DNA of 64,000 bases. Source: Rhodosorus marinus CCMP1338 (lineage: Eukaryota; Plantae; Rhodophyta). Where the stretch lies: positions 868,001 to 932,000 of the forward strand of contig JAMWBK010000004.1 in NCBI GenBank assembly GCA_029953675.1, read 5' to 3'. The position numbers and the translations under genes are program-made. The notes beneath the pieces were generated by a model that made no database searches, was not told where the DNA came from, and saw only the letters and a program-made list of their open reading frames with translations. Shown in pieces: positions 10,928 to 58,463 of this stretch; positions within the stretch are counted from its first letter, which is position 1, and each line of letters begins with the position of its first letter.

Positions 10928-11395
10928 CAGCGCACCTAGGGCTATGCTAGTAAAGTCCTCCGCCGGGGGGCCGCGGCTTCAGCCCTTCGAAGAGTTAAGG
11001 AACGACGGTATGCTGAGAGCATGGCCAGTCTGCCTTGCGCTGAGGGTCGCTCTCACCGGTTCCAGCCATTCATTGTGGAAAGCTTTGGTCACGTCGATAA
11101 GTCGGGTTTAGAGTGGTTGCGGAAATGTTTTGCTGAGCATCCTACTGAATATTTGGCGCTCTTGAGGCGTTTAAGTGTCTCCCTTTGGCGATATTCCAGC
11201 GACATGCTTTCCGAGGCGCGCCATCGGCGCCTGGGGTTGCATACTTCCCTCCCTAGTTATTAGTTCATCTTCACGCCTTGCGTAGCGCTTCAGGCTATGC
11301 TAGTAAAGTCCAGTAAAGTCCTTGCTAGTAAAGTCCTTGCTAGTAAAGTCCAGTCCAGTAAAGTTCTAGCATGCTAGTAAAGTCCAGTAAAGTCC
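10928..11395 (+). mobile_element. Family B RT/RLE non-LTR retrotransposon 3' fragment with expanded tail array
   Basis: Encodes ...FQPFIVESFGHVDKSGLEWLRK...HTSLPSY*, then the 3' UTR and AGTAAAGTCC repeats at 11302-11395. An extra tail piece is embedded at 10940-10958. Confidence 0.9.
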
Positions 11396-13084: not shown

Positions 13085-13760
13085 GATTGGCTTTATTGGC
13101 TTTATTAGCATTGACTTTATGAGCCAATGCTATGCTAATAAAGCTGGCGTTATTAGCATAGCCTACAGCGCTACGCAAGCCGTTAAAAGGAACTAAGAAC
13201 TAGGTAGGGAAGCGTGCAAACCCAGGCGCCGATGCCGCGCCTCGGCAAGCATGCTGCTCGAATATCGCACAGAGAGACACTTAAGCGCCGCAAGAGTTCC
13301 AAGTATTCAACAGGATGCTCAGTAAAACATTTCCGCAACCACTCCAAACCCGACTTCTCCACGTGACCAAAGCTTTCCACAATGAAAGGCTGGAACCGGT
13401 GGGAGCGGCCCTAAGCGCGAGGCAGGCTGGCCATACTCTCAGCATACCGTCGTTCCTTCACGCGGCGAAGGGCCGAAGCAGCTGCTCCCCGGTGGCGGGC
13501 GGCAGCCGTGAGATGGGCGCTTGCCACAGGGCATGTAATCTCGAGGTCAACATATGCTGAGCGTCTGGCGGCAGCATCGGAGACGAGGAGATCAGCGATA
13601 CAGCGGGGCGGCGGTGCCCTATCCGAGACAGATCTGGATAGTTCCGATTCCACCTCAACCGTATGCCCTACCCGAGTCAGAAATTCGCTGAGAATGTACT
13701 TGAAGCGAGTGTGACGCCTCGTACGAAGACCTCTCAACAGTCCACATGAACCTAAGAAGC
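13085..13760 (-). mobile_element. Family B 3' fragment (RLE domain) with variant tail AATAAAGCC
   Basis: RRHTRF, ADLLVSDAAARRSAYVDLEITCP, ESFGHVEKSG and the B 3' UTR. Confidence 0.9.
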
Positions 13761-13762
13761 CT

Positions 13763-16229: not shown

Positions 16230-16232
16230 CAG

Positions 16233-16452
16233 GGCTTTGCTAGCATAGCCTGAAGCTCTACGCAAGACGTGAAAAAGAACAAAGAACTAGGGAGGGAAGC
16301 GTGCAAACCCAGGCGCCGATGGCGCGCCTCGGCAAGCATGCTGCTAGAATATCGCCACAGGGCGACACTCAAACGCCGTAAAAGCGCCAAGTACTCAGTA
16401 GGATGCTCAGCGAAACATTTCCGCAACCACTCTAAACCCGACTTATCCACGT
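16233..16452 (-). mobile_element. Family B 3' terminal piece (~220 nt) lodged inside the N-terminal part of another B copy
   Basis: HVDKSGLEWL...LPSS, 3' UTR and GCTAGCAAAGCC tail, with B N-terminal coding sequence on both sides. Confidence 0.85.
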
Positions 16453-17750
16453 GACGGTGTCGCGAAGGTTACGCTCCAGGCTCGTGAAGATGAAGTCCAG
16501 GGTGGTCCCCGCCACTAAGAGCTCTCCGCGAGGTAGAACGACAGGCGGAATCCTGCCACGGAGGGGAAGCGAACCGCCTTCCAAAGAAATCCATCGCCGG
16601 AGCCAACTCCGCAGGCGCGTACGCCAGATGCCCCAGTCTCCGCCCTCCTTCAGGACATAAGACTGCAGGTCCATGGGCTGCGACCTCGCAGCCGTGCCCG
16701 GAGAGCCAATCGTGCTTCTTCCCCTTAGACCCGGGTGAGTCGGTCCTCGCTCGTTTGCCTCCTAACCTCACCAAACTGGTCAACCGGCCACTCCGCGAGG
16801 CTCGCGGGATGGCTCCCCCGGGCTTTAACCAAGTAATAGGGGCGTTCTCGACCGACATACCCTCCGGCTCCCCTTCCTCGCCACTCGCACTGGAAGTAGT
16901 GCTGGGAGCGAAGCTCTCTAATACTCCCAAACTCCGTAGCTCTCCCTTGTGACTGGAGGTCAGCACAAGGTGCCTCTCGCGGTCGAAAAAGGTAGAGGCG
17001 GCTGCGCGCAGATGGCGTGGACCCGACGCGAAACGCTCCGAAAGTATCCGCTCCATGCGATGAATGCGAAGCCAATGGATGGCTGCGGCTTTCACTTTGG
17101 TCTCGTGCTCAGAGAGCCCTGCTGTTTCTCCGGGAGAGAGCAAAGTGCCCGGAAAACGGTCGAACCCGAAATGCAGTACGACCTGGGGTTGAGAACGCAA
17201 CCAGCGGGCGCTTCAGGTCACTGCTCGGTAGGCTTCGCCAGTAGGGCCTGCAGGTACTTTGCCGCGTTCGCTGTGACCCTGAAGAGAACATCCCGACGCT
17301 CGTAGTTGGCAAATATGAAGTCTTCCCGACGGCAGCCCAAGGATTCCGCGAAAATGTTCCGGAAATCGCGCATGTTCGGCACCTGGCCACGGGTTGTCTG
17401 CGGCCAAACGTTCCGCCCCCACAAAAATTGCAAGGTCGTGTCCGTGGTTCCAACATTAGCCTCTTTCTGAGGCTAAAATCTTATCATTGCCGCCGTACGG
17501 GCGGTGGTGGTGCACTTGGGGCGATCACGCACTCCTGCCTGGGCCGGACGCTGTTGACCCACGGAGGGCCTGCCCAGGACGGGAAAGTCCGCTCCGGCTG
17601 AGGGAACATTCGAAGGATGAGGCAGCTCCGCACACCTCTCCGAAGAGGCGCCAGCCGCGGAACCATATTTGTCACCTCCAGATCCCAGGAGCCGCCTTCG
17701 ACTGTCCCGGGACCGGTTGTTGTTGATTGACCTGGGGAAGTTGACTGTCG
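16453..17750 (-). mobile_element. Probable 5' and N-terminal region of family B
   Basis: MDLQSYVLKEGGDWGIWRTRLRSWLRRW matches DLKGHVDQVGGDWGVWRPQFQSWIRRW at 41517. Further broken ORFs (16469-17200, 17218-17433) lie upstream. The outer boundary is uncertain. Confidence 0.6.
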
Positions 17751-21352: not shown

Positions 21353-24300
21353 TCAACCATAAACTGCGTTTAGTTTCTTAACCTCAGATTTGTTGAAGAT
21401 AAACCATCGAGTGGGACCCGCACTCCTGTCGTCTTCCCAAAATTTGAATTTTGTGTTTCCCGGGGCCCTCAAAGCGTTCACGGTGAAGTTGGAGCCCACG
21501 ACGACGATTGCGCGAAGCGGGGATGGCCCGGAGACAGAGTCAGCGGAAACTTTGACCCCGGTTGGCATCGTAGAAACTGAAACTGTTGACGTCTGAGGCC
21601 GAATCTGCCTGGTTTCGACAAATGTCGTCTTATCGCTCAAGAATCCTGCTTGAAACTCTAGGTAGAAAAAGTCTCCGTGGTCTTGAACTTTGTACGAGCC
21701 ATTCGCCTTTTGAAGGATCGTCTGCTCCAAGTGCTCGTGGCAGACTGTCGCGCAGTGAACCAGCAACACGCGGAGATTGTACTCCTGCGGCGGAACTGGC
21801 GCTCCTCGGTAGTCGAAGCACTTCACGTTGTAGTTGATCGTATCACCAATTTTAAATGTACTAGGCATCCGTCCGAAGGAGCACTGACGCTTCTTGGTCG
21901 TTTGAGGCGCACAGTCAAACGTGGCGCTGGACAGCTGCGCAGCTCCCCCAGCCCCCGTCGCCCGTATCGTAATCTGATCCAAGCCCCTGACGTTGCAGTC
22001 CATGTTCTTTCCCGCACTGGGATTGACAGTTCCGCTGTTGCAAAGGACCCTACCAGAGACACCTTTGACGGCCACCGCAATATTTCTGGCGCCGTTGACG
22101 GCATCGACTCGCATTGTTAGCTTGGCGCATTTGCCGGGAACGAGGTAGTCCACTTCCGCTACCGGAACGATGTTAATGCGCTTGCCTTCTTCGATTTTGT
22201 TGAACCGACCGAGGGGCCTCACAGTCCTTCTGATGAGGTTGAACAAACCAACTTTCTGGCCCACCGCTTCTTCCAGCCGAGTCCTAAATGTCCGAACGAT
22301 GCCGCTCGTCAAGGGGTTGCCGTTCAAATCCTCTGCCCTCTTCCTGACCATCAGTTTGTACTCCGTATCTGCCAGGAGCTCCTGGCTAGGTCTGATGAAC
22401 ATCCTCCTCTGGTCGGCGCTGAATGAGGCTCGGAAACCAATGTCATATCCTCCCAAGGCTATGGGTTGCACTAGTTGAGCAGCATCCATTGTGCTCTGGA
22501 CGTCCATTGGCTCGCTAAACACAACCTCGATCGCTTGCTTCACACCGATCCGACCTGCCGGAAGCACTTGCTTGATTTTCGGATTGCTTCTATCGAAAGC
22601 ACCGCATCTAAACCTTGCGTCCGCCCAGCTTCCAATCCCAAGGGCCGGCTTCGTCCTTTCCGTCCGCTTAGTCACAAGCGCCACTACTTTGGCTCCCCTC
22701 ACGTCCACGTCTATCGACATCCCCCTTGCCGTTCTTGTTAGCGGTCTTGCGTTCCGGAATACCCGCTTCTGACCCTTCGAAGAACTCCACGTCCTCACCT
22801 CGAAGAACACCTCGACTGGTACGAACACGGTCCTGACATCGTCAACCCCGATCACAGCCTGCAGTCGCTTGCAATTCGGCGGAAGAGCCAATCTAACCAA
22901 TGAGTCCGCTACCACGGCTACGCCCTTGGCGAATTCTTCTCCCCGAATGGAGATCGGTGGAATCCTAGCAACGCCTTCAACCTCCTGCTGCCTGTCCCTG
23001 AGCACGTCAACCTGTTTCCTTCCGTTAACAGCCTCAAGCCATTTCAGGTCAGATACGAACCGCGAGAATCCAGTACCGGTTGTGAATCTCGACCTAAACG
23101 GGTTGCGCATCTTTCGGCCTTGGGTGTCCATCAAGTTACGTGACACGACAATCTCGTAGTCAGCCTTCGCTGAGAGCATTCCGCGGGGACTAATCACAAC
23201 GGAATGCGTGGAAGGCAGATAAGTCAGTTTGCTACGAACCAGCTGGTTCCTACTCCTGTTCCTCAGTTTTATGTTCTTCCCGTTGACAGCCTTCGGATTA
23301 ATTCTTTTCGAAAATTTTACTGTGAGCATGGAAGTTATCTCAACCTCCTTCGCGCCCTGCGGCGGGGTCATCTGAACGACTGTCGGGCGACTCTTGTCGA
23401 TTTGAAATCGCACCCTGAAGATCTTCTGAGCTCCAAGTGAGACGTAGTAGAGCCACCCATCGGGTCCTTGCTTAATCTGAACCACGCCAGCTACGTCAGA
23501 AATCATTGTTTGGGGCTTTCCTTTCATACCCCCGGCCTCACTGGGATTGATCAGTTTGATCCACCTGAAAGTGAAGTCCGCCACGGCAACCCTATTTCGA
23601 ATTGCTTGCGGCCACTTTGTGGAGTCGAGGCGAAGCGCGCCCGTCACAGCAGTCCCTTCGTTCCGGGCATAGATCCACAACGCCCGCTTCGTACCGAGCT
23701 TGCTTTTCCCCGTTCGGATGTCTGCACAGAGCTTATTGCCGTGCACTTTGATGTTGTCCACGTCCCCTTCTACACATGGCCAGCCAAAATTCAGACCCTT
23801 CATACCTCGGAATACAGCCTCCTTCGTCGCATATCCAACTTGGGGCACCAGTGGAGTCCTGAATACTCGATCGTAGCTGATTCGGAAAGGGTTCCGCAAC
23901 CCATAGTTCCATACCTTGGCTGCGTTTGGCCCTCCACCACGGAACGGGTTTGATCTACAGGGAGCACCGGTTCGGGTTATACATAAGATCTTACCACCCA
24001 TAAATTCGAGGTCTTGGGTTCGGAACGCGGTATCCTCAAAGTCGGGAGGGGCTTGAGCATCACCCAGTGATATGAAGATATTACCAGAGGGGCTCATAGC
24101 CAACCCACCCATGTTGTGGTGCTTACTATCCAGGCATATTACGTCCTTGCTGAAGATCGACTTGTTCAACCCGCAGCCCGTTGCGGGCGGGACTTGCTTA
24201 CCAATCAAGACGACTTCACCAAAGGCTCTAGTGAGATCTCTTGATACTCTGAAACGCACGATTTTCCCAGATTTTACACCGTCATCGGGGGTGTTGAGTC

Positions 24301-24649
24301 TCCGGTCCACGTACTGAACGTACAGGAACGGGTGCTTGTTGAACTGCGTATCGATCAGACAAGAGATCAGTCCTCTCCCTGCCAAAGAGACAATGCGGTC
24401 GGAGATATCAAGGAACGGTTTCGACTGGACAACCCCATTAATCGCTAGGTGAATTATTCCCCGCTTCTCACAGACAATCATCCGCGAGACATCGCCCGGA
24501 ATCCAATCCACATCAATAGGAGTCATAAAATCCCCATCGACAGCGACCTCGTGGACAAGATTCTCCATCTCCACCGTCACCTCGCCCCTTCCAACCCATA
24601 CCAGAACCAACAAACAAATCAACTTCAATCCCATCCTTTCCAAATCCAT
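21353..24649 (-). CDS. Secreted GSDH/PQQ-dependent sugar dehydrogenase-like beta-propeller protein with Big_5 and NPCBM-like modules (1098 aa)
   Basis: Signal peptide. Propeller motifs HNMGGL..SPSG.IFISLGD, MGGKILCI, YGLRNPFR, NFGWP, GPDGWLYY. Two SbsA/Big_5-like repeats (PTVV...P, VKFSKRI; VVFSEPMD). NPCBM-like FAKGVAV...LQAVIGVDD. Intronless. Confidence 0.85.
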   Translation of the reverse strand: MDLERMGLKLICLLVLVWVGRGEVTVEMENLVHEVAVDGDFMTPIDVDWIPGDVSRMIVCEKRGIIHLAINGVVQSKPFLDISDRIVSLAGRGLISCLIDTQFNKHPFLYVQYVDRRLNTPDDGVKSGKIVRFRVSRDLTRAFGEVVLIGKQVPPATGCGLNKSIFSKDVICLDSKHHNMGGLAMSPSGNIFISLGDAQAPPDFEDTAFRTQDLEFMGGKILCITRTGAPCRSNPFRGGGPNAAKVWNYGLRNPFRISYDRVFRTPLVPQVGYATKEAVFRGMKGLNFGWPCVEGDVDNIKVHGNKLCADIRTGKSKLGTKRALWIYARNEGTAVTGALRLDSTKWPQAIRNRVAVADFTFRWIKLINPSEAGGMKGKPQTMISDVAGVVQIKQGPDGWLYYVSLGAQKIFRVRFQIDKSRPTVVQMTPPQGAKEVEITSMLTVKFSKRINPKAVNGKNIKLRNRSRNQLVRSKLTYLPSTHSVVISPRGMLSAKADYEIVVSRNLMDTQGRKMRNPFRSRFTTGTGFSRFVSDLKWLEAVNGRKQVDVLRDRQQEVEGVARIPPISIRGEEFAKGVAVVADSLVRLALPPNCKRLQAVIGVDDVRTVFVPVEVFFEVRTWSSSKGQKRVFRNARPLTRTARGMSIDVDVRGAKVVALVTKRTERTKPALGIGSWADARFRCGAFDRSNPKIKQVLPAGRIGVKQAIEVVFSEPMDVQSTMDAAQLVQPIALGGYDIGFRASFSADQRRMFIRPSQELLADTEYKLMVRKRAEDLNGNPLTSGIVRTFRTRLEEAVGQKVGLFNLIRRTVRPLGRFNKIEEGKRINIVPVAEVDYLVPGKCAKLTMRVDAVNGARNIAVAVKGVSGRVLCNSGTVNPSAGKNMDCNVRGLDQITIRATGAGGAAQLSSATFDCAPQTTKKRQCSFGRMPSTFKIGDTINYNVKCFDYRGAPVPPQEYNLRVLLVHCATVCHEHLEQTILQKANGSYKVQDHGDFFYLEFQAGFLSDKTTFVETRQIRPQTSTVSVSTMPTGVKVSADSVSGPSPLRAIVVVGSNFTVNALRAPGNTKFKFWEDDRSAGPTRWFIFNKSEVKKLNAVYG

Positions 24650-27246
24650 TTCAGTTCCTCCTCCGTCTATTCTTCACGCCCTCCTCCTCCTCCCCCTCCG
24701 CCCCCTCCTCCCCCCGCTCCCCCCTCCTCTCCATCCCGCTCCTCCCACCCTCCCACCACTACCCCCACTCTCCTACCATGATACAACTTCCAAACTACAA
24801 TTCTATATACCCCTCCAATCCTTTCGCTCCTCGTAAACCCCGTCCTTTCACCATTACATCGTTTTTCTCTATATCCACGGAAATCAATCCAATTAATCTA
24901 TACAAATGTCAAACTCATCCAGAGGTTAGTCGCTCAAAAAAAAAGTCTCTATGAAAGAATAGTTAAAATCTAAATCACTATTTTGCGAATTGTCACGAAT
25001 CCTACAGGGGGTTATGTATGTTTTTACTGTAGTGGAACTGGAAAAATCCATAGAGGAAACCCTAGAGGAGAAAACTTGGCGTTTTTTTGTCCATTTCCAA
25101 ACCGCGATAGTTTGAAAAAATAATAAAGTAAAAAAGCTAATAAAGTAAAAAAGCGAATTGGCTAATATATTTAAAAAATGTGTCTAGAAATACTTGATAT
25201 TTTTTCGGTTGTTAGATCTGTTGAAATGAGTAAAAACTTTCCACATTCCAAGGGGTTGGGTGGTTATTCGCAGATTTTTTCAGCTAGGGGGTGGGTATCC
25301 CTGGGGGGGGGGGGCAATGCATGGATGAAAATAAAAATAAAATGACACTTTGATGACTCCTTGAAAGCCTCTTTCTGCTTTCTTCCTTGTTGTCTTAAAT
25401 TATGTGAATCATGTCATTATTGTAGTGAATCATGGGCCGAACGACGTAAATTTAACTCCTTACAATCTTAAATATCCTGATGTGTTTTGGATTTCCTAAA
25501 TTTCTTATCGTCACGTGGATGGAAGGGCAGAATCCATTGGTCGAACCGTCCGAGGAATATGGAGAGGCCCATAGAGAACACTTTTTTCTGCCACATTCTT
25601 TGTTTTGTTTTAAAACCAAGTTGGAGTAAAAGTAAAAAATCGTGACAAAGAAGAATTTGAGTGAACTTTTTAATAAACTATTCAAACTAAATTGGAGCAT
25701 TCACTATCCCCAAGTAAAAGTAAAAAATCGTGACAAAGGAGAATTTGATTGAACTTTTCAAGAGATCGTGTATGTTCTAAAATATATCGCCGATAATTGC
25801 GAATCCATGAAATTGTCATTTTTGCACGGCTTTTACAATGTGAAAACTGGAAATTTTTAGGGTCTCCATACAGAGCCCGAGGCCTTTATAATATCGTTTT
25901 TACTCTTTTTATTGACGATGGAGTCAAACTATATAGTACATATTTATGAAAAAAAAATAGATAGACGACAATTACAATAAAATGGTAACTTTACGGGTAT
26001 GAACTTTTTTTATTGTTCGTGTTCGGTTTGGAAACGACGTAAATAGGAAATTTGGGATCTAAAATATCATTGAATAACCAGTACAACGCTCGATTTTTTT
26101 CTTATACGCCGATATCATGACGAATTCATTCAATCATTGAGTTCGCCTTTGCTGGAGTTGGCTTACCCAACTGTATCGAGGGCGAGGGATAAGCGCGGAT
26201 GGACGAGGAGGTTTAGAAATTGTCGAGAGTAGGGAGGTTGCCTCATCAGGCGACAACTAATGTACTCCACGTGTGCGCATCTGTTTACAAAGCAAGATGT
26301 TGTCTGTACTTTTTCATTGGCTGCGCAACCATCCGTTAGGTGCACGAGGGTAAAGCTTACGGTTACTGGGGTTACTGGGGGGTTTTGGACGGCTTTGTTT
26401 GTGGAAAACGACGGAAAAAGCTGATAAAAAGTTACAAGTATGATTGTGAAGGAGGTACGCGGGCCGTACCCCGAGCCTCTTGTGATCGCGGGCCCACACA
26501 CCTCGGGTACCCGCGAAATGGAGAGGGCGAAAGAGCTGCTACAAGAGCAGCAGCAGCAGCAGCAGCAACAGCACCAGCATAGGGGAGCAGAACAGGAGGC
26601 AGAGAGGAATGCAGAACAGGGTGCAGCGGAGCAGGCCACAGCAGACCCAGCTGTCGCCTTTCTCCACCAGCTGCAGAGCTACGACCACTGCTATACCGCC
26701 CTGGGAATCGGCCAGTCGGACATCGCCGACTTCTACCAGGCCGCCTTCAACCTCTATTCCCGCATCAACTGCTCAAAAGAACTTCAATCAGTGACAGGAC
26801 GTCTGAATGAGCTCGCCAAAAAACCGCATATGTGGCAAGACGGACGAGCCACTACGACCCCGCCTCAACCCCCGCAGCAGCACCCGCGAACGGCGGCGGT
26901 CAATCAACATGCGGCAGAACCCATCATCAATCAACTTGCGGAGGGGACAGGTGTCCTTGCCTCACTGGACTATGCCACGGCCTTCCCTGTTGCCGGTACC
27001 AGCAGCACACGGCCAACGTACGCTCAAAGGACTGCCCAAAGTACTCCAGCTCGAGAATCAGAGGCTCAACTCCGACCAGCCGGGCGCCCGGGCCCACAGA
27101 GCCAGCAGGCAGCGCTCCGACAGTTGCACGCCGCTGTGGGAGGGTCCTCCTGGGGACCTGAGACCAAGCCGGTACTGGCGACCCTGAGGAATGTAAGATC
27201 GCCACGGATTGACGAGGTAGCCCCATCGGATTTCACCACGCTCCTT

Positions 27247-27884
27247 TTGCCCTGAGGAAGACGTGCCACGATCGACATGAGGCCCTCGTCGGCCGCTTTT
27301 CTTGAATCCCACCGCCGGTTTAGTGTTTCGGTATTCAGAGCGAGCAAAGATTGCAGTGCGTGTGCAATCTCGTCTGGTAAGTCACCTTCCGCCGGGTTGG
27401 GAAAGAGCGCTTGTAGTTGTCTCCACGTAGCCGCGGTAAAAGGTGCCATTTCGGTGGCCTGTAGGCTCCGAGCTGCATCTGAAAGGCGGCCAAGGTGTGC
27501 TAGTTTCAGCGCTCATCTTCACGCCTTGCGTAGCGCTTCAGGCTATGCTAGTAAAGTCCAGTTTCAGCGCTCGCTTGTGGCGCTCGAGATGTTTGCGTCG
27601 AACCGCTTCCACAAGCGAGCGCTGAAACTAGCACACCTTGGCCGCCTTTCAGATGCAGCTCGGAGCCTACAGGCCACCGAAATGGCACCTTTTACCGCGG
27701 CTACGTGGAGACAACTACAAGCGCTCTTTCCCAACCCGGCGGAAGGTGACTTACCAGACGAGATTGCACACGCACTGCAATCTTTGCTCGCTCTGAATAC
27801 CGAAACACTAAACCGGCGGTGGGATTCAAGAAAAGAGGCCGACGAGGGCCTCATGTCGATCGTGGCACGTCTTCCTCAGGGCAA
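27247..27884. repeat. Fold-back inverted duplication (276-bp arms, 28-nt loop) inside the family C element
   Basis: 27247-27580 is the reverse complement of 27609-27884 apart from one substitution and a 58-nt addition (micro-insertion plus TSD) in the left arm. Confidence 0.92.
27515..27559 (+). mobile_element. 45-nt family B terminal micro-insertion with 13-bp TSD
   Basis: ATCTTCACGCCTTGCGTAGCGCTTCAGGCTATGCTAGTAAAGTCC, flanked by AGTTTCAGCGCTC at 27502-27514 and 27560-27572. Confidence 0.92.
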
Positions 27885-30798
27885 GAGCCCAGGTCCTAGC
27901 GGTCTCCGAGCGGAACACCTCCAAGGTGCAACTCAACAGACGCAAGTGGCGTTGATTCGTGTATTGCGACAACTGGCGACCGCTCCTGAGAAATTTTCCC
28001 CGGCTCTGACCCGCGCCCTTCGCAGTAGTCGACTCCTGCCGTTCACGAAGCCTAACAAGGGTTCAGTGCCGCAGGAGCATCCCGGAGTTCGCCCTATCGG
28101 AGTACCAGAAGTTTTGCGCAAGGTAGCAACGCAATGGACTCTTCACGCGGTTATGGACAGGGTGCGTGAGCTCCTGGTGCCCTTACAACTGGGTATCGGA
28201 GTAAGTGGCGGGTGCGAACGCTCACTTCACGCGATCCAGGCCCATTTGTCATGCGAACCCGATTCGGTGGTCCTTCGCCTAGACCTTGAGAATGCCTTTA
28301 ATCGCATCGAGCGACGCCTTGCCAAGCAACTGGTGGACGAAAACTTGCCGGAGCTTGCACCAGTGTATAGACTTGGCTATGGAAGCGACAACGCGGACTC
28401 ACCGACGCTCTGTGGCTGGCGATCTTCCCCTGGACAGAACGAAACCGACACCTCTCGCCTGACTCTCCAAGCAACTACAGGAGTCCAACAGGGAGATCCA
28501 CTGGGGCCGGTGCTACATGCACTATCCCTGGCGCCCTTTCTAAGAGCGTTGCGAGCTAAGTTCCCCAACGAAACGATTGTTGCTATCCACGACGATATCA
28601 CGATTGTCGGGTCGCTACAAGCCGTGAAGGCGTCCCTGGCATGGGCAAAAACTGTGCTCCCCTCTCTTGGAGCACGCCTGCAACTCGGCAAGTGCACTGT
28701 GTACGGGGCGAACACTGACTACCACGCGAGTGGTCAACCATGAGATTCCTGGAGTGCAAGTGACCAGAGACGGAGTCACCATCCACTCGATACCGATAGG
28801 CAGCCGAGAATATATCGAACAGGAGTGCCGGGGGCTGCAAAATAAGCATGAGAAACTCTTTGAGGAAATTGCCAAGCTCCCACAACCGGAGCTTACGACG
28901 CAAATTGCCCTCTTCAGGTTCTGTGCAGAAACGCGACTAGACTATGTGCTACGATGCCTCGCATACGAGTTTGGAAGAAATCTGGCACGCGAGGCCGACG
29001 TGATGACCAGATATCACCTGGAAATTCTATTCGGAGGCCTCGCTACGACAGCTGTAGAGGACGATGAGTACGCAGAGCTGATCTCGGACCAAATCGCTCT
29101 GCCCTGCCGCTGGGGAGGTTTGGGTTTCGCTACTCGAAGCGCGTCCAACCCATCGCGTTTTACTCGTCATGGAGAAACACCTTCCGGAACAATGAAGATG
29201 AATGGCCATACCTGACTGAACTAGAGCGGGAGGTTACGGCAGAACGCTCACCAGACACATACGAGCCGATGGATCAAAGATGGTCGACTGCACAGCTGGC
29301 GGACCAGATCTGTGCATCGTCGCGAGCAATACAACGGAGGCTCGGACCAGAAACCCCGCCGCGGATCTTGGCACTGACAACCCTGCAACAACCGCGAGAA
29401 ACATCTCTTCGAAGCGCCCCGGGCGAGACTGCAGCTTGGAATAATGGTTCAATACAACAAACCCTCTCTCGAGAGGCACACCATTGTGCATTCCAAATGC
29501 TGGTCACCAACCCACGAATCTCCCCTGAAAACCGAGCTCGAATACGGTCTGCCGCGGGATCCGGGTCGGGAGTCTGGCTACGTGAAATACCAACGCTGAC
29601 ACCGAAAAATTTGAGTGCGGTTGAGATGCAGGTAAACGTTCGACAACTGCTGGGTCTGCCAATTCCGGGATTGCGGACCACCGAGAAGTGCACTAGTTGC
29701 CGGAGTAAACACGGAAGGACTGGGGTACAACGGTTTCATCACTGGCCAACATCAACTGGACTGTGGCAACGTAGGCATGACGAAATCTGCAGAGAGCTGG
29801 CACGGTGGCTAAGGCGATGGAACTTCATGGACGTAGAGCAAGAACCTGAGGGGTACTTCGAGAACTACGGACTGCGACCTAATATCGTTGCTAGGCATCC
29901 GAGGACCAAACAAAGGTATGCGCTGGATGTGACGGTGGTGTCACCATTACAGGGAAAATATTTGCGGAGGAGCCAAGATGATAGCGGATACGCGGCGAGA
30001 GCTGCGGAGAAGTGGAAAATCGCTCACTACAAAGAAGCGATGGTGATCGAGAAACCGGATGATAAGTTCATCCCGATAGCGATAGAGACGTTTGGGCGTA
30101 CGGGGCAAATGGCACAAGAGTTCCTCCGCGACAGCCGCAAACACCTACTGCACAGGAGTGAGGAGCTGAGAGAAGTGAGATCCCAGATAAACCGGCAACT
30201 ATGGCGAGGTAACGCAGAGATAGCATTAGGCGCTTTGCGCGTGGACCAGCTGGAGAATCCGCTGGTGCCTGTTTTTTCTTTTGAACGTAGCATGAGACCC
30301 CGGTAGCGGGGTTCCAGTAAGTTTCTCCCTAGATAGGATTAGACGTAGTGTTGCGCTGCAGTAGGCAGCTGCCCAGTAAAGCTTACGGTTACGGTCCGAA
30401 GATTTTGATGTAAGCGACTTCAACGTCGATGGAAGTTGCAATGGGAAGCGGTGCTACGCTAGTACGCCGAGGAGCTTCTGTTGTCCATCTGTTCAAGATT
30501 CAGTCCAACTCGAATTGCCCCTTCCACCATGGAAGTCATCTGACGGCTTTTCCACTTGCGACTAAATTCCAACATACACGAGGCCATCCTGGCCTTTCTT
30601 CCCCTCAAAAATGAACCACTCCAAGAGTGGCAGTCAAACTGCCGCACCAGGGACTTCACGTATGACCAGTCAGAATTTATTTATTGTGAGTACCGGAAAT
30701 CTTGGTGTCAACCACAGGCTGCATCGCTAAAGATAGCAAGGAGCCCAGACAACAGAGTATTGAACTCGACTCTATACCTTAAAAATGCTCTGTGTAGG

Positions 30799-33700
30799 CT
30801 ATTTGTACCTGGCAACGAAGGAAGTCTCACTATCTTCGGTAAACTTCAGCATCCGGAACGCAGGCTCGGATGAATCATCAAGCCACTTGCGGAATTTTAG
30901 CTCAGTTCCACCAAACGACAATTCCTCCGGGCCACCGAATCCGAGCGTTGTACCAATGACCACGCGTTCCGTGAACGGAGTTGAACGGCCAACCTTCCCG
31001 CCGAAGGACACTGGAAGGCCTGAAGGCTCAGTGTCCACGTCAACCTCAACAGTCTTCGGCTCCACGACTACGGTTGAAGATGCAGAAACGCCGTTGTCTC
31101 GCACGCGACATTCAATCTCGATGCGGCTGAAGTCTTGATAGTTGTCAACGACCCAACTGCCCTCCAGCGTGTTCGCGATTGTTGCCTCCGCTCGGTTGGT
31201 ACAGTCGCCGTGAGTGCAGTGGAGGCGATTGATGAACCACGTAACGCTGGTTTCCGGCAGTTCTTTGCCAGCACTGCCGTAGGCAACTCCGCTAAACTTC
31301 AGCTCCTTGCCAACCGTGAACGTGCTCGGGAACCTGGTAAGAACGCAACCTGGCTCGCCAAAGTTGGGTGTACACTCGAATACTGGGTCGCCAAGGATAG
31401 CCACCTCGTCACCAACGCTGGAATTCGCGGCTCCCGCGCGAAGAACAACCTCATTCTTGTCCGTGATGTCGCATAGAATCACCTTTGATCCGTCCGTTTT
31501 GTTCAATGTCAAGCTGCATTGCTTTCCACTTAGCGTTTCTCCATCACCTTCAACTCTGAACCTAATATTTCCGTTTCCGGCCGATTCGGCTCCCACGCCA
31601 ACCTGCATTGACACGGCTGAGCATTTCCCATCAACCTGGTAGTGCAGATTTCTCTGCACCCGGTTGATCTTCAGGCACGTTTTCATTTCTACGGAGGAGA
31701 AGAAAAGTTGCAGTTTCTTTCCATCCGGAGTTCTGTCCTCCTTCCATTTGCCGTCCTCGCTCGAAAGCTTCAGATCGAAGAGGGACACTTCCTTGCCCTT
31801 GCATATCAGCGATTCAACCTCAAATACGCAAGTGGCGCCCGACGACTTGCTAACAAACCGCAAGCTGTCCTCGCCCTTCAAATTGATCTTCTTCCTCTTC
31901 GCGAGGTCAGAGTCATTGAACGAACCCCTGGCTGCAATCCCGGAAGTCTTGATTTGGAGATCGCACTCCCGGCCATCGGCATGCGCGGCACTTTTGCCGA
32001 ATGATACAATGGCTGAGGAACAGGACTCCAGCTTGAACTTGAGTTTCGTGTCTCCCTTGACGCCAATACCGTTTCCGTTTTTGTCATAAGTCACGGCCTT
32101 GTCCAGCACTGTGCAGTCGGAGGATACCTCGTGATTACCCTTTCCGCTGACGTCGACCGGGTCCAAAGCGGTCACATCCACTGTTGATCCAAAAGGAGCG
32201 GGTGTCGCAATCGAAAATTTCCTCACTCGCGCTACGTCAAGGTGATTTCCGTACACATCTCGAACGCCCAGGTTCAGGAAAAGCTCGTAGTTGTTATCAG
32301 GCAGCAACGGAGGGTTGACTGTGACATTGAGCACCGTCGAATCGTGGTTGAACGTCTTGGTTGCGGTCACGTTTGCTGACTGTGTTTGAATGAAAATAGC
32401 ATCGAAGGCATGCTTATGGTTCATCTGCTTGTCGAACGTGATCGTGAAAGTCGGATCCTCGTACGGCAACTCCTGCGTTGTCGGCAGTATCGATACAACT
32501 TTTACAGGGTTTGTGTCGTATCCGTTGCAAAACAGTTGAGGGCTGCCCCACGAGCCCACGGTAGTTTCGGAGAGACCAGCGCTTGGCGGGACGCATTGCA
32601 GATCCAACTTTTGTCCGTTAACGTCTTCAACCACTCCTACCTCGCCGTTGTATCTCAGCAACGTGTCCTGCGTCTGATAAATGACGGTGGGTTCTCCATT
32701 TTTCGTGACTGTCACGGAACAATTCATTGCTCCCGTCATTGGGAACCCGGCGACATCGTCAACACCGACTGAAGTCCGAAAGTGGTTACACGTGTCCGGG
32801 ATATTTACTCTGACTCTAGAGGGAACGGATGGGAAGCCAATTCCCTTTCCGTACTTGATGCCTCGGATGGAAATCTCCGCCCCACCGATCTGCTCGTCCA
32901 GGGTCAAACCCTCCGGCGAAGATTTTGTGATCTTCATATCAGAGATCTGTATGTTGTAAGATGCGTTCGTCTTGAAAGTTGAGGTAAACTTTGACGTCAT
33001 CTCAACACCGTTTATGGACGAGGCTTTCGTCACTGTGACTTTGTACTCCGTGTTCTCCTTCAGCGCTGATGTAGGCGCCACCTTCGCCGTCAGTTGCTCG
33101 TAGCGAAAGCTGATCTTTACAGGCACAGTCGTCCCGCTGGCTTTCTCGGTGAGCTCAATTGCGGCGTCCAGAGTATCCGAATCCATAGGCAAGCTGAACC
33201 TCACATCCACGGTCTGGTTTACAGGCACCCCCGCGCTTCCGTCATAGGGAACGAATTCAGCCACTGTAGGCGGACTCTTGTCCTCCACGTACTCAATGCG
33301 GTAAAGCGTATTCAGCTTATATGAAGTAAGGTAGACATATCCATCCGGATGCGGTTGCATGTTTACGATCGACCCAACCCCATTGGCAAACTCAATGGGC
33401 CCCTCCACCATCTCAAACTTCGAGTTCACTTTCAGCCTGTAGATCCAGTCGTTGTCGTAGTCAACCACGAATAACCAGTTGCTGTATTCTGACGGCCAAT
33501 CAGGGTTGGTATTCTGCATCACATCCACAATACAGGTTCCCGCGGGTTCCCCGAAGAAATGTGCATAATCCCAGATCGAGTTGAATCCAGCTTGGATCTT
33601 GCCGTCCTGGATATCTCGGCAGGCCGTGTAGTTCATCATGGGCAAGTCGTAGATGGGTCCTTGGGTACAGGGCCATCCAAAGTTCTTTCCCTTTTCCAGT

Positions 33701-34548
33701 GCGTACAGACTCTCCCAGGAAGCTTCTCCCACATTAATCGAGTACACAACGTCATCAACTTCAGAGTAGTGGAATCGCCACGCGTTTCGGATGCCCAGAT
33801 TCCACTGTTTCGCAATGTTCTCCTCCTGCGAAACTCCAGAGGTGAACCATGGGTTCCCAGGTACTCCCTTGCCGTTCCTGGTTACCCTCAGAATTTTCCC
33901 AGTCAAATACCCATTCTCCTGAACTACCATGAGCTCCGGAATAAAACCCGCGCTCGATCCGTCGTCACCAATCGCAACATACAAGTATCCGTGCTTGTCC
34001 ATCGTGATACCTCCCATACTGTGCTTGTTTCGATCGATGCAGATAACGTCGTCCTCGATCGGGTCCAATGTCGTGTTCAGACATCCCGGAGAGCTGGTGA
34101 CTGTGCCAAGGATAACCTTCTCGAATGTCGCCTTGGTGAAGGCGTTGTTGACAGTGAATCGAGCCGTGCTTCCCGTGGTGGGACTACTGTCATCACCTTG
34201 GGGCGGCTTGTTCACGTAGCTGCAGTACAGGTACCGGTGGTTCTCGAAATCGTAGTCGAAGGTGCAGGATTTCAGTCCCCGAGCGCCATAGAAGGCGATC
34301 TGTGAAGTAATATTAAGAAACGGTTCCTCCTGCCTCACATTGTTCACATACAACCACGCCACTCCGTTAAGCTCCAACAGAATATACTTCTCCTTATCGC
34401 CGCGCACGAAAACCGTTCCGATCGGGCTCGAGACGTCTGCATCCACGGTCTCGAGCTCGAACTGTGGATCATTGAAGTTCACGGCCAGTCCAGCACCGAA
34501 CAACAATGCGAAAAGCACCACGAAACTCCCCAACGCACCACCTCTCAT
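30799..34548 (-). CDS. Second secreted GSDH/PQQ-dehydrogenase-like multidomain protein (1249 aa), paralogue of 21353-24649
   Basis: ATG 34548 opens a signal peptide (MRGGALGSFVVLFALLFGAGLA). HSMGGI...LYVAIGD, LTGKILRV, GIRNAW, NFGWP, PDGYVY. Big_5-like (SPPTVAEFVP, VRFSLPMD; ITFDKQM) and NPCBM-like (YGKGIG...FRTSVGVDD) modules. Same C-terminal module as the paralogue. Confidence 0.85.
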   Translation of the reverse strand: MRGGALGSFVVLFALLFGAGLAVNFNDPQFELETVDADVSSPIGTVFVRGDKEKYILLELNGVAWLYVNNVRQEEPFLNITSQIAFYGARGLKSCTFDYDFENHRYLYCSYVNKPPQGDDSSPTTGSTARFTVNNAFTKATFEKVILGTVTSSPGCLNTTLDPIEDDVICIDRNKHSMGGITMDKHGYLYVAIGDDGSSAGFIPELMVVQENGYLTGKILRVTRNGKGVPGNPWFTSGVSQEENIAKQWNLGIRNAWRFHYSEVDDVVYSINVGEASWESLYALEKGKNFGWPCTQGPIYDLPMMNYTACRDIQDGKIQAGFNSIWDYAHFFGEPAGTCIVDVMQNTNPDWPSEYSNWLFVVDYDNDWIYRLKVNSKFEMVEGPIEFANGVGSIVNMQPHPDGYVYLTSYKLNTLYRIEYVEDKSPPTVAEFVPYDGSAGVPVNQTVDVRFSLPMDSDTLDAAIELTEKASGTTVPVKISFRYEQLTAKVAPTSALKENTEYKVTVTKASSINGVEMTSKFTSTFKTNASYNIQISDMKITKSSPEGLTLDEQIGGAEISIRGIKYGKGIGFPSVPSRVRVNIPDTCNHFRTSVGVDDVAGFPMTGAMNCSVTVTKNGEPTVIYQTQDTLLRYNGEVGVVEDVNGQKLDLQCVPPSAGLSETTVGSWGSPQLFCNGYDTNPVKVVSILPTTQELPYEDPTFTITFDKQMNHKHAFDAIFIQTQSANVTATKTFNHDSTVLNVTVNPPLLPDNNYELFLNLGVRDVYGNHLDVARVRKFSIATPAPFGSTVDVTALDPVDVSGKGNHEVSSDCTVLDKAVTYDKNGNGIGVKGDTKLKFKLESCSSAIVSFGKSAAHADGRECDLQIKTSGIAARGSFNDSDLAKRKKINLKGEDSLRFVSKSSGATCVFEVESLICKGKEVSLFDLKLSSEDGKWKEDRTPDGKKLQLFFSSVEMKTCLKINRVQRNLHYQVDGKCSAVSMQVGVGAESAGNGNIRFRVEGDGETLSGKQCSLTLNKTDGSKVILCDITDKNEVVLRAGAANSSVGDEVAILGDPVFECTPNFGEPGCVLTRFPSTFTVGKELKFSGVAYGSAGKELPETSVTWFINRLHCTHGDCTNRAEATIANTLEGSWVVDNYQDFSRIEIECRVRDNGVSASSTVVVEPKTVEVDVDTEPSGLPVSFGGKVGRSTPFTERVVIGTTLGFGGPEELSFGGTELKFRKWLDDSSEPAFRMLKFTEDSETSFVARYK

Positions 34549-36789
34549 CCTCCCCGATAGTTCAGACTCAATCAGGCTATGCACCCCTCCTCCAATCACT
34601 AAAACAAAACAGGAAAACTTCTCAAAAGACCTTGTCACATCCCGTACCTCCTCTGCTACCCGTCTCCTGCTTCCACTTCTCAAACTGAAGCGCTTTATAC
34701 CTCCAAAATCCGAATCCTCTTGTTGACTGCAGAGAAGAAGAAGACGATGCCTTCCGATCCTCTTTCATGAATTCTTTACAAAATCCCTGGCCAAAGGATC
34801 CGGCTCACTGCCCAATGTTCCTTACAACGCTTAAGCTGCCCCTTTGCTCCATGCTGACACGCCGTCGATCACACTTGAAATCCGAAAATATTTTCGTGGC
34901 ATCGGACCAATGTTCTTGTATTCAGGTATTATAGCATAGGTCAAAAGTCACTAATTGAATCCAATCTTTGGCCAGCAGATAATTTCCATTATTTTGTTTT
35001 CGAAAAAAGATCGTTAATCTCGAAATTTGAGTGGTGTCCATCGGATTGTCTTCCTCTCGCCCCACTCCCACCTTTCCCCCACTCCAAAATGCTCGAAGAC
35101 AAATTCAAAGTTAAAATTTATGGGGTGGTCGCTCGCATGGGACGCCCAGTAAGGTCTTAGCTGCCCCAAACAAGATAATATTCAAAAAACATACTTTGAT
35201 TTGGAAGGAAAGGATATCTGAGACGTTGACAATTTATTTTTAGTATTTCCATGAAAATAATATTCACAAAACCTATTATTTGGAAAAACACCTGGTGAGA
35301 TTTTGTTTGATGACGTTTTAATTACAATGTGATAATTGGTTGTTGAGTTTGGTGTTCGATACGTCGCGAAGGAGGTGTAAGGCACAGTTTTTACATATAA
35401 TATTAGTTCTTTTGGAGATCGACAGGTTTTTCAATGATTTCGAAGGAAGCTTGCGGGGCTGGTCATTTCTGTCTGTTTCAGAGAATAGTGAGCGGCATCG
35501 CGAATGAACGTATTCATCTGAGTTGCTATCAGCCCCCCCTACACTTTCATATATGATTTACAGTGAGCCAAATATTTTTTTCTATGGAATGGCGAATTAC
35601 TCTGAGAAGATAGACTGGGTATGATATTTGATATTTGAGAGTCTATTTGGATATGAGAACGTTGTGCGGTAGGGCGTCCTTTCCGAGAACGTGTACCAAC
35701 CGTCGAAACAGAGAGGGCCGATGTAAAGACTCGGAAAATGGGTTTCTTTCTCGAAGGGGAAGAAACCCGATGGGACGGTCAATCTATTTGTGGTTTTATG
35801 GTGCCGATGGGACAGTCAATATATTGTGATTGAAAAGGACTACAGGGACGATACATTATGGGCGTCTGCCTCACCTCACACACATTACATTGACGTTTGC
35901 GTCCTGGTCATCACGCCCGGTTCTCTGATAAAACACCTGATAACAGATCTCTCCAACTCGGACGCTGAAGCTCGAACTTGGGCCTCAAGCTAGAGCCTAC
36001 TGAGGTCGACTTACGTTCACCCGTCAGACAACGAGTCAGCCGAAAAGACTTCAAAGAACTAAGATTAAACACGCCCCAAAACCCTACGAAATCAGCTAGC
36101 TAAGAAATCCTCTATATTTAGAAGTATTAGAGTTGTTTTGTACTCAAATGGACTTGTTTTTGCTGTTTTTTGCAAGGAGCGGCTAGATCTCTTCTATAAT
36201 TTTTGGAAATTCAATAGAGGTTTTATAGGAAGAGATTATGTGGACTGAACGAATTTATTCAGAGAATAGGAAAAACAATTCTTCTGATGACATCGAGCGG
36301 GTCCTCGCTGGGAGACAACGACGCCCTGAGATGACTGTAGTTGTTCGGAGAATGAAAAAAAAACTCAGTTGCTGACAGAGAGTGGCTCCCTCCTCGCTGG
36401 GAGAACTCGACGACAAAACTTGATCATCCGTTTATTCAGAGCCTAATTTTTACTACCCTGAGAAAGGAAAAACAAGACCCTGGAGGATGACGTGCGTCTA
36501 ACAATAACGCAGTATTGGAACGGCAGCTGGGCAAAGAAAGATCCGTGAGGAGGCTGTGAAGACGCCCTGGGTCGCTACGAAGCCATCGAGAACCTGCGCT
36601 ATCAACTAAGCCAAAGCGCTCGGTGATGAGGGGAACAAACGGTGTGATCTTCGCGTGCAGCGGCTTCTGAAAAAAAGACCAAGCTCATCGTCAGCATTTA
36701 TCCCTGGCCAAAAACGAACGGCTGCGCACAAACTTTTTGCATGCTCTACACTTACCGGCAGGCATGAATTTGTTTATTCGGAGTGTGAA

Positions 36790-38619: not shown

Positions 38620-39888
38620 TCAGTGGATCTTGTGTTTCAACCTAAGGTGCCGTTTCAAATCCGAGCTCTGGAAGTACTTTGAGTTGCAGACGCGGCACTG
38701 ATGGTGTCTAGACTTTTCATGGACTGACCTCCGGTGCCTCACGAGCTTGGGTTTGGTCCCAAAACCGCGTCCGCAGATATCGCAGAAGTTGAATGCGGCC
38801 TTCTCATGAACAGTTTGAATGTGCACACGAACGTGACCGGACTGAGAGAATCTCTTCCCGCAAATTTCGCAGGGATAATTGCGTACGCGCAAATGGACGC
38901 TGTCGATGTGCCTCTTCAACTCGTACACCCGTTTAAACTCGTGTCCACACTCGGTGCACACATTTTCGCTGCCTGCCTCATCGGCGCTACTCCGCGGAGG
39001 GGAAGCAAACGAGTCATCAATACCCGGTGGATCAGCAGACTCGCTCGATGTCAATTCCTCTGTGCTTGGAAGTGCCAGCATTTCCTTCGCTGCAACAGCT
39101 GATCCAAGCGATTTGAAAAGCGCTCTGTCAAACAGCTTGTTCACAAAGTCCCTCCGCAGTTCACAGAGCTCGGGTCCACTAACAAACCTGTGAGCCAAAT
39201 TGACCTTGTACTTGCTCTCTGTCAGCTTCATTCCCATGGCATGAGCGATTTCCACCTGCATCCTACCCCAGGTCTTCGACAAAGCAGGTGCCACAGCTCT
39301 AAACCGTTCCCAGCAAGTCCCTTCGAGTTTGACGTCACGGTTGAAGTCGAGCGGCCCGTAATCCTGCTGGCCGTCGACATCTGAAGCCTTAATAACTTCG
39401 TCCACAATCCAGGGTGCATCCTTGTGGAATAAAATGGCCCTCATTGAGCACCAGCGCATACAATTATTGGTGATTTCGCCGCTCATCGTCGACAAAGATA
39501 TACGACCAGATTCGTATGCTACTGAAGCATGCGCCCTGAAGTTACTGCTCCCACGAACTGAGTACATCGAGAATCGTGTATCCAATATGCCATCATCGGA
39601 CGAGAATTTCGCTAGTGGGTTACTACCGTTCGTCATCCGACCTAGGCAGTACTCGTCAGAGTCATACTCGCACATCAGCAGGGACGTCCTTTGGATCCGC
39701 ACCGGAGCCATTTGCCAACCTGAAATCGACTCTGACTCTACCCGTTTCTCCACAGCAACAGACGACTCCAACCACCTCGAGTTCTCGTTGCATCGGTCCT
39801 CAGTGTACAACAGCCAACGTAACATCGGCTCAGACACTTTCCAATCCCCAAACAACATCCTCTTCGTCGGCTCATCCATCCCGTCCAT
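38620..39888 (-). CDS. C2H2 zinc-finger protein (422 aa) with four C-terminal fingers; putative transcription factor
   Basis: CTEC...HIDSVH, CEIC...HIQTVH, CDIC...HRRSVH, CRVC...HLRLKH. Intact intronless ORF. Confidence 0.9.
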   Translation of the reverse strand: MDGMDEPTKRMLFGDWKVSEPMLRWLLYTEDRCNENSRWLESSVAVEKRVESESISGWQMAPVRIQRTSLLMCEYDSDEYCLGRMTNGSNPLAKFSSDDGILDTRFSMYSVRGSSNFRAHASVAYESGRISLSTMSGEITNNCMRWCSMRAILFHKDAPWIVDEVIKASDVDGQQDYGPLDFNRDVKLEGTCWERFRAVAPALSKTWGRMQVEIAHAMGMKLTESKYKVNLAHRFVSGPELCELRRDFVNKLFDRALFKSLGSAVAAKEMLALPSTEELTSSESADPPGIDDSFASPPRSSADEAGSENVCTECGHEFKRVYELKRHIDSVHLRVRNYPCEICGKRFSQSGHVRVHIQTVHEKAAFNFCDICGRGFGTKPKLVRHRRSVHEKSRHHQCRVCNSKYFQSSDLKRHLRLKHKIH

Positions 39889-46091: not shown

Positions 46092-46173
46092 TCCAATACA
46101 TCACCCCGAGAGCATCGACTACTTTTTTTTGCGCTGAAGGCGATGCTAGCTGAAGGCAATGCTAGTTACCCGG

Positions 46174-46221
46174 TTCATCTTCACGCCTTGCGTAGCGCTT
46201 CAGGCTATGCTAGTAAAGTCC
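46174..46221 (+). mobile_element. 48-nt family B terminal micro-insertion
   Basis: TTCATCTTCACGCC...GCTAGTAAAGTCC, flanked by AGTTACCCGG (46164) and AGTTACCTGG (46222). Confidence 0.85.
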
Positions 46222-56273: not shown

Positions 56274-56328
56274 CAAGTTGCGATTGAGGAATCATTATGC
56301 GAACCTGAAAAGTGAGCCCAGTACTACT

Positions 56329-58354: not shown

Positions 58355-58463
58355 CCAGTACTACTAGAACCAGAAAAGAACCAGAGGAATCCTATATAAC
58401 CAGTGAACCACGAGAACCCCTATAGAACCAGAACCCTGAACCAGAAAACCTGACAGAACCAGA

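Follow-up and report, generated by a model that had tools for sequence, protein, structure and literature searches.

An R2-group retrotransposon family in the red alga Rhodosorus marinus with an invariant AG and a probable weak C-Y^A-G preference at its insertion sites

A 64-kb window of the Rhodosorus marinus genome (assembly GCA_029953675.1, contig JAMWBK010000004.1, approximately positions 868,001-932,000; all coordinates below are those of the window unless a locus is named) contains young copies of a retrotransposon family, here called B. Its reading frames and junctions mark it as an R2-group, or restriction-like endonuclease (RLE)-type, non-LTR (long terminal repeat) retrotransposon that inserts through target-primed reverse transcription (TPRT). 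It is a new red-algal member of the RLE-type elements, assigned at group level. Six young insertions, five of them with clean target-site duplications (TSDs), were read in approximately 173 kb of sequence, and in every one the insertion point is followed by AG, corresponding to a primer strand ending in CT-3′. The reading favored here is that B probably uses TPRT with this invariant ^AG and a weak preference for C-Y^A-G, of which CTAGT is the commonest form and not the rule.

Young insertions and their target sites

An earlier reading of the sequence alone, without database searches, had singled out three insertions with TSDs (27502, 46164, and 56318/58355) and a fourth tail at 11395, and had proposed CT^AGT as the integration rule of the family. 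All three insertions are present, two of their targets are confirmed by paralogous empty sites, and the fourth tail is followed, as had been said, by AGT. What was observed directly is the class of the element, its junctions, the TSDs, and the sites lacking an insert; the features concerned are listed below (UTR, untranslated region).

27502-27514 (+): upstream 13-bp TSD AGTTTCAGCGCTC, after GTGCT; reconstructed target GTGCT^AGTTTCAGCGCTC
27515-27559 (+): young B insert of 45 nt (47 nt if a 2-nt overlap is counted), in essence just the 3′ UTR, ending GCTAGTAAAGTCC; 100% identity to other young copies
27560-27572 (+): downstream 13-bp TSD AGTTTCAGCGCTC, then GCTTGTGG
27609-27629 (-): paralogous empty site GCTAGTTTCAGCGCTCGCTTGTGG on the other arm of an inverted repeat, uninterrupted
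46164-46173 (+): TSD AGTTACCCGG, after tail-like GCGCTGAAGGCGATGCTAG CTGAAGGCAATGCT
46174-46221 (+): young B insert of 48 nt, its first base directly after the B stop codon
46222-46231 (+): TSD AGTTACCTGG, with one CpG-to-TpG mismatch
46225-46933 (+): older B-like copy with intact CCHC/RLE frame; 86% to young B, 94% to the copy at 13767-14464
56318-56328 (-): TSD 3′ of the element, CCAGTACTACT on the + strand, AGTAGTACTGG in element sense
56329-58354 (-): young B copy of 2026 bp, 5′-truncated and internally deleted, with a 48-nt 3′ UTR ending GCTAGTAAAGTCC
58355-58365 (-): 11-bp TSD 5′ of the element, CCAGTACTACT on the + strand, preceded by ...GGTTCT; target GGTTCT^AGTAGTACTGG
10939-10958 (+): B tail fragment of 20 nt, GGCTATGCTAGTAAAGTCC, after CACCTAG, abutting the next copy
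10959-11395 (+): young B copy keeping the C-terminal end of the RLE segment, then AGTTCAACC; compound tail at 11299-11395

The site at 27502 belongs to an inverted repeat with arms 99% alike; the arm without the insert continues through GGTGTGCTAGTTTCAGCGCTCGCTTGTGG, and the repeat is older than the B insert, since the insert is present in one arm only. At 46164 the reconstructed site is AATGCT^AGTTACCYGG with a 10-bp TSD, and from TACCTGG on, the downstream duplication is the 5′ end of the older copy at 46225-46933. The minus-strand site at 56318/58365 has an uninterrupted paralogue (...TTTTCTGATTCTAGTAGTACTGGGCTCAC...) at approximately 1526-1605 of L007, one of five further loci described below. 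Because empty paralogous sites read through, it is the target that contributes the junctional AG(T), and the TSDs are genuine. The tail ending at 11395 is followed directly by AGTT, so that either AG alone was duplicated or the copy is nested; the flanks of 10939/11395 yielded no paralogue and no reading frame across the joined flanks, which leaves this 5′ junction ambiguous.

Since the three window sites had themselves generated the CTAGT hypothesis, further insertions were sought in approximately 110 kb more of the R. marinus genome (loci L004-L008), reached via host-gene paralogues. Two were found, both in L006 and both matching the 3′ end of B with 100% identity. The first is an insert of 40 nt with target GGTGGGT^AGTCTAAGA and a 9-bp TSD; the second, on the minus strand, is a 26-nt insert with target CAGGTTCC^AGCCTTTCAT (GTTCC^) and a 10-bp TSD, located inside an older B-like copy of which more than 10 paralogues carry the uninterrupted GGTTCCAGCCTTTCATTGTGG. 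No young B insertions were found in L004, L005, or L008, and L007 holds only longer B copies with unreadable junctions. A candidate empty site at L007 16029 was rejected because it proved to be a downstream repeat held in common. An automated TSD search around ten older B-like copies gave nothing reliable, and a scan of a metagenome collection with the B tail and 3′ UTR patterns GCTNNAGGCTATGYTARYAAAGYCC and TGCGTAGCGCTKYAGGCTAKG returned no match.

Together, the six young copies bear the footprint of TPRT, with one exact 3′ end, variable 5′ truncation to lengths of 26, 40, 45, and 48 nt in four copies and of 437 and 2026 bp in the remaining two, TSDs of 9-13 bp in five, and uninterrupted paralogous sites for three. 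The four window copies are 99.6-100% identical across their common 3′ ends. The last 26 nt of B are CGCTTCAGGCTATGCTAGTAAAGTCC, and the tail motif occurs 14 times against 1.0 expected.

Several observations concern the surroundings and shape of these inserts. The inverted duplication at the 27502 site (271 nt, 99%, 27244-27514 and 27617-27887) consists of the 5′ part of family A, a second RLE family in the window with a reverse transcriptase (RT) open reading frame (ORF) at 27277-28743 and an RLE ORF at 29269-30306; its arms reach GCTTGTGG/CCACAAGC and flank a 28-nt center, and a twin-priming-like inversion or a fold-back is a possible origin for the duplication at 27244-27887. The 2-kb copy is inserted at the edge of a degenerate array of short AACC-ended units (AGAACC, AGTGAACC, AGAAAACC...; window 58366-58470, L007 1481-1680) that resembles B-like tail units in reverse orientation. 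The mini-inserts at 27515-27559 and 46174-46221 both begin 0-3 nt from the B stop codon and are therefore essentially the 48-nt 3′ UTR; with two cases, a start at this boundary could be chance or a favored stop or break there. A conserved hairpin in the 3′ UTR was sought by eye, and the idea was dropped for want of covariation among subfamily variants.

Identity of family B

The copy at 56329-58354 (-) encodes an RT (Pfam RVT_1, E=3.9e-16) that, among PDB entries, is matched best by R2 proteins (9nl3, 9dou; E about 2e-11) and less well by LINE-1 ORF2p. Its CCHC/RLE segment is missing and was read instead in the older copies at 46225-46933 and 13767-16231, which carry, 3′ of the RT, the motifs C-x2-C...H-x4-C, RH, E-x-E, ADLL, VDLAI, and K; the conserved C-terminal motifs of B are C..C, RH, E, (RP)AD, DxxV/I, and K. 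As a single sequence this segment matches R2 weakly (E=0.3), and a Pfam search with it matched no model. A profile of 10 C-terminal domains (A2), built from B, family A (29269-30306), and eight distant relatives, matches R2 residues 989-1151, comprising the zinc knuckle and RLE, at E=3.4e-10. In that alignment C19, C22, R47, H48, and D102 are invariant and D87 and K132 nearly so. The domain order is RT, then a CCHC knuckle, then a putative PD-(D/E)xK restriction-like endonuclease. The RT and profile matches to R2 place B among the R2-group elements and, with the 5′ truncation and TSDs, bear out the earlier assumption of an RLE-type element using TPRT.

Pfam searches of N-terminal ORFs (L007 19345-21013, from the longest copy, and window 16469-17200) found no zinc-finger, Myb, AP-endonuclease, or other match, a negative that is provisional because no intact full-length copy was recovered. 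B reading frames are unannotated in the NCBI assembly. The closest proteins, with 78-86% identity, come from short transcripts or contigs of other Rhodosorus-like samples (L001, L002) that have no usable flanks, and the next relatives, with 34-38% identity, are from Rhodosorus, Symbiodinium natans, the sponge Ephydatia muelleri, and metagenomes.

Internal deletion recurs among B copies. Compared with 10959-11070 and L007 20551-22761, the 2-kb copy lacks approximately 0.8-0.9 kb, including the CCHC/RLE segment, at the junction ...QHAFTRR|THIVESFGH, while the copy at 10959, which is just as young, still has the last part of it. The related-strain transcript L001 and L007 17811-19357 are also internally deleted, and the last 76-240 nt are kept in each. 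Deletion derivatives that retain the 3′ end seem to be common.

Site preference and proposed mechanism

At the six sites AG occupies positions +1/+2 without exception, against a background P(AG) of 0.062 computed, like the other base frequencies, from 160 kb of the R. marinus genome, and T follows at +3 in five. Upstream of the nick, T stands at -1 in five events (the sixth has C) against 0.16 given AG (p about 5e-4), and C stands at -2 in five against 0.25 given AG. The three of three CT^AGT sites of the window exceed chance, given P(CT given AG)=0.037 and the background P(AG), and they are the same sample that generated the hypothesis. Neither of the two independent sites in L006 contains CTAG (GGGT^AGTC, TTCC^AGCC), and the second also lacks the T of AGT.

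The proposals drawn from the sequence alone fare unevenly against these counts. CT^AGT fails as an integration rule at both independent insertions, and a nuclease strictly specific for CTAG is contradicted by GT^AG and CC^AG there. Full CTAGT is nonetheless over-represented, at four of six events, although at neither independent site. A primer strand ending in ACT-3′, as had been predicted, fits five events, whereas the site AGC gives GCT-3′, leaving CT-3′ as the invariant end. Enrichment of AG(T) alone had been put forward as the sign of microhomology priming without endonuclease preference; the two independent sites go part of the way toward it, but the excess of T at -1 and C at -2 persists.

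Similarity between target and tail extends to both sides of the nick. Junction microhomology measures 3-5 nt (AGT, AGT, AGTA, AGT, AGT, and, at the L006 minus-strand site, TCCAG). The upstream match to the tail junction (..ATGCT|AGT or ..GTCC|AGT) is 4, 5, 2, 2, 1, and 3 nt, a total of 17 nt across six sites where chance would give 0.59 nt per site (p about 1.5e-4; about 0.04 for the two independent sites alone), by a statistic devised post hoc with the data already in view. In older B-like subfamilies with AAT-type tail units, the tail is followed by AGT, AGC, AGA, AGT, and AGG, and AG is thus more than the opening bases of a further tail unit, a point that is suggestive only because the TSDs of those copies were not recovered.

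From these junctions the following course of insertion may be proposed. A first nick would leave a cut strand that always ends CT-3′, and in five of six cases ACT-3′, at an element-sense site N^AG(T). In the tail RNA (GCUAGUAAAGUCC-AGUAAAGUCC...) every unit ending in GUCC is followed by AG(U), with which this primer end could pair, and this would explain why all 3′ junctions read GTCC|AG(T). Upstream, a looser preference, favoring C at -2 and, at -1, a pyrimidine that is usually T, would complete the consensus C-Y^A-G-T; because these bases lie outside the primer, the preference is ascribed to the nuclease or the ribonucleoprotein. The TSD would result from a second nick 9-13 bp downstream, and reverse transcription would mostly abort early, within about 50 nt. 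The assignment of single bases to one component or another, and of the choice of AG to pairing or to the nuclease, is interpretation. As a side observation, four of the five clean events have G as the first base behind the TSD, where the top strand is nicked (C^G, G^G, G^G, A^G, T^T; window 27573, 46232, and 56317, L006 22594 and 14454), a weak hint of a preference for G at the second nick.

A number of points weigh against the favored reading. The events are only six, five of them with clean TSDs, and four of the six had formed the hypothesis; each independent site retains just part of the motif, and the nick of the L006 minus-strand insertion can be placed anywhere in the common TCC, which makes its -1 and -2 bases ambiguous. 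CTAGT occurs 212 times in the 160 kb and is occupied four times, and is thus far from sufficient. A nuclease preference for ^AG is inseparable, from sequence, from pairing between primer and RNA. An intact full-length copy is absent from the loci covered, and Pfam gave no match in the N-terminal part, where DNA binding would be expected to reside.

Three other accounts of site choice bear on the same data. The RLE might be a short-motif nuclease that nicks the center of palindromic CTAG, with CT^AGT as its rule and the copy of the motif in the tail driving self-nesting. Four of six sites do read CT^AGT although CTAG is depleted in the genome, the 46164 insertion falls in tail-like sequence precisely at the homologous GCT^AG position, and B bodies directly follow B tails at 10958, 13767, 16232, L004 14458, and L007 19357. 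Against this stand both independent insertions, whose inserts are 100% identical to the family and whose TSDs of 9-10 bp are clean, the second of them (TTCC^AGCC) confirmed by many paralogous empty sites, as well as the 208 of 212 CTAGT sites that are unoccupied, and such a nuclease appears improbable. Priming by microhomology alone would assume nearly sequence-independent nicks, of which only ends able to pair with AG(U) or UCCAG are extended, with the upstream CT a small-sample accident or a by-product of B-related targets. That AG is the sole invariant feature speaks for it, as do the microhomology present at all sites and the three of six targets in B-like or tail-like sequence; the T at -1 and C at -2, however, lie across the nick and outside the priming segment, the upstream match of the two independent sites is marginally above background, and AG follows the tail even in subfamilies with AAT-type units. 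This account is rather unlikely, if less so than the strict nuclease.

The tail RNA might also pair with the intact target across the future nick (..GCU|AGU.. or ..UCC|AGU..) and so place the nuclease. Contiguous matches to the tail junction that span the nick are 7, 8, 6, 5, 4, and 5 nt long, and their upstream parts exceed expectation as given above. The statistic is post hoc, however, the matches are short, a precedent in the R2 group for pairing upstream of the nick was not found in the RLE-element papers covered (PMC4640811, PMC3636483), and a plain C-Y^A-G preference of the nuclease accounts for the same data, all of which make guided choice very improbable.

Possible self-nesting, arrays, and tail fragments

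B bodies, 5′-truncated or apparently full-length, stand behind B tails at the five positions named above, far more commonly than random placement predicts. The largest arrangement in the window is the following.

13150-17517 (-): head-to-tail array of older B-like copies

It comprises an N-terminal part with a 224-nt 3′ end (17517-16232), a copy running from RT through RLE to tail (16231-13767), and a further segment (13760-13150). That B nests into itself had been suggested from the sequence alone, and the head-to-tail succession of copies behind B tails is plain, but targeting of old tails is not distinguished from template jumping, which predicts the same structures. The embedded tail at 10958, which had been set aside as not fitting, does fit a nested insertion at GCT^AGTAAAGTCC in which the TSD, of 10 bp, is the length of a single tail unit: with its second nick 10 bp farther along, such an event would put the new body right behind the old tail and leave an extra AGTAAAGTCC after the new one, as observed. 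It fits template jumping equally well.

Template jumping is an established activity of R2-type RTs. The arrays and 5′-junction tail fragments might accordingly be products of end-to-end template jumping, or of re-initiation on tail repeats, within a single event and not of insertions aimed at old tails. Tail fragments do stand at the 5′ junctions of B copies (10939-10958 and 46131-46164), the compound tail at 11299-11395 repeats (TT)GCTAGTAAAGTCC, and neighboring copies are nearly identical (13150-13760 and 13767-14376, 95-98%). On the other hand, the 46164 insertion has its own 10-bp TSD and is therefore a separate event, and nesting, with a 10-bp TSD equal to one tail unit, suits the junction at 10958/11395, since a second nick placed 9-13 bp past GCT^AGT would coincide with the end of the old tail, as at 10958 and 16232. 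Jumping is a substantial possibility for these structures, somewhat short of an even chance. A more elaborate scheme, in which tail-RNA pairing across the future nick (GCU|AGU or UCC|AGU) chooses the site, the RLE cuts opposite the duplex, and each insertion recreates two sites and so feeds self-propagating head-to-tail arrays, would be improbable.

Tail-derived sequence takes other forms as well. The compound tail reads GCTAGTAAAGTCC AGTAAAGTCC TTGCTAGTAAAGTCC TTGCTAGTAAAGTCC AGTCC AGTAAAGTTCTAGCAT GCTAGTAAAGTCC AGTAAAGTCC and could stem either from serial micro-insertions into a tail or from repeated re-initiation or template jumps. Tail fragments of 16-20 nt (GGCTATGCTAG.., GGCAATGCTAG..) stand right behind ..TAG with AG alone duplicated at 46131-46164, 10936-10958, and L005 20120-20140 (-); they may represent junctions of another kind, staggered by 2 nt, or an effect of 5′-junction microhomology. 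An ATG within the tail motif (GCTATGCTAG) opens long frames into downstream sequence at 46159-46869 and L007 19345-20265, and the frame in L007 runs, possibly by coincidence, into the N-terminal part of the B copy behind the tail. The 3′ region of family A (30300-30390) also has CC|AGTAAG and GCCC|AGTAAAGC, and a CCAGTAAAG-like 3′ motif may be common to RLE families of the R. marinus genome.

Other features of the window

The window is dense in retroelements, with several non-LTR families and a few host genes. An exact protein look-up of 14 window ORFs matched one host gene, the C2H2 protein below; the others are two GSDH/Big_5/NPCBM paralogues, one astacin, and one ferric reductase.

38620-39888 (-): host gene for a C2H2 zinc-finger protein, exact NCBI protein match
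60049-62532: Ty3/gypsy pol

The GSDH/Big_5/NPCBM paralogues, at 21353-24649 (-) and 30799-34683 (-), lie 6 kb apart, and at least four further copies occur elsewhere in the genome, mostly amid transposons. The Rhodosorus orthologue in MMETSP has only 86% identity, so the public transcriptome strains represent a lineage distinct from the assembled one.

Comparison with known systems

R2 proper is specific for 28S ribosomal DNA (rDNA) through N-terminal zinc-finger and Myb domains. R2 proteins (R2Bm and avian R2; 8gh6, 9nl3, 9dou) are the best structural matches of the B RT and of its zinc-knuckle/RLE segment, and the order of nicking and then priming would be alike in both. B differs in inserting at many unrelated sites, in the N-terminal ORFs recovered, which have no detectable zinc-finger or Myb domain, and in its TSDs of 9-13 bp. 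The six B sites are unrelated to one another; among them are positions in a different transposon, in a B-like copy, in a repeat array, and close to a gene.

Zepp of Chlorella is an AP-endonuclease (APE)-type element with poly(A) tails that nests into the tails of its earlier copies. It resembles B in its head-to-tail clusters, where a new copy begins at the tail end of an older one, whereas its endonuclease type and poly(A) tail set it apart, and in B nesting and template jumping are not told apart.

In TPRT generally, the nicked target pairs with the template's 3′ end, as is known from L1 and R2, and the L1 target TTTT/A matches its poly(A) tail. As in L1 (TTTT/A, poly(A)), Dong, and Togen, the bases that the nick exposes in B complement those at the 3′ terminus of the template RNA, so that motif and tail co-vary. 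The proposed integration rule had been regarded as unusual; it would be less so than supposed, since there are precedents both for a target that pairs with the tail during TPRT and for RLE elements that lack a strict target site. Dong and Togen are microsatellite-specific RLE elements of (TAA)n and (TG)n, respectively (PMC4640811), whereas B targets are unique sequences without tail-repeat arrays that have only 4-8 nt in common with the tail, with a pairing segment of 2-5 nt, and only one of the six (46164) lies in tail-like sequence.

RLE-type elements are mostly site-specific, but dispersed ones are known, among them HERO, EhRLE3, and YURECi (PMC3636483, PMC4640811). B resembles these in having an RT followed by CCHC and PD-(D/E)xK segments, in TPRT with 5′ truncation, and in dispersed insertion specific to neither rDNA nor spliced-leader genes, and differs from them in its short C-Y^A-G-T bias and 10-nt repeat tail. 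Crocodilian Utopia families with weakened specificity have merely short target-like motifs at their junctions (PMC4640811), and B is similar in being an otherwise dispersed RLE element with short junction sequences that resemble a preferred target. The Utopia motif, however, derives from U2 small nuclear RNA genes and its TSDs are rarely recognizable, whereas the TSDs of B are clean and its motif is related to its own tail.

The addition made here is a modest one, a red-algal family that behaves like known microhomology-assisted TPRT and for which a CTAG-specific nuclease is not borne out. RLE-type retrotransposons are under development as gene-insertion tools, and mechanistic knowledge of them comes almost entirely from rDNA-specific R2. 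As a recently active, dispersed R2-group family with an invariant CT-3′ primer end, 3-5 nt of pairing with the tail, and a stagger of 9-13 bp, B offers a natural case for weighing nuclease against template pairing in target choice.

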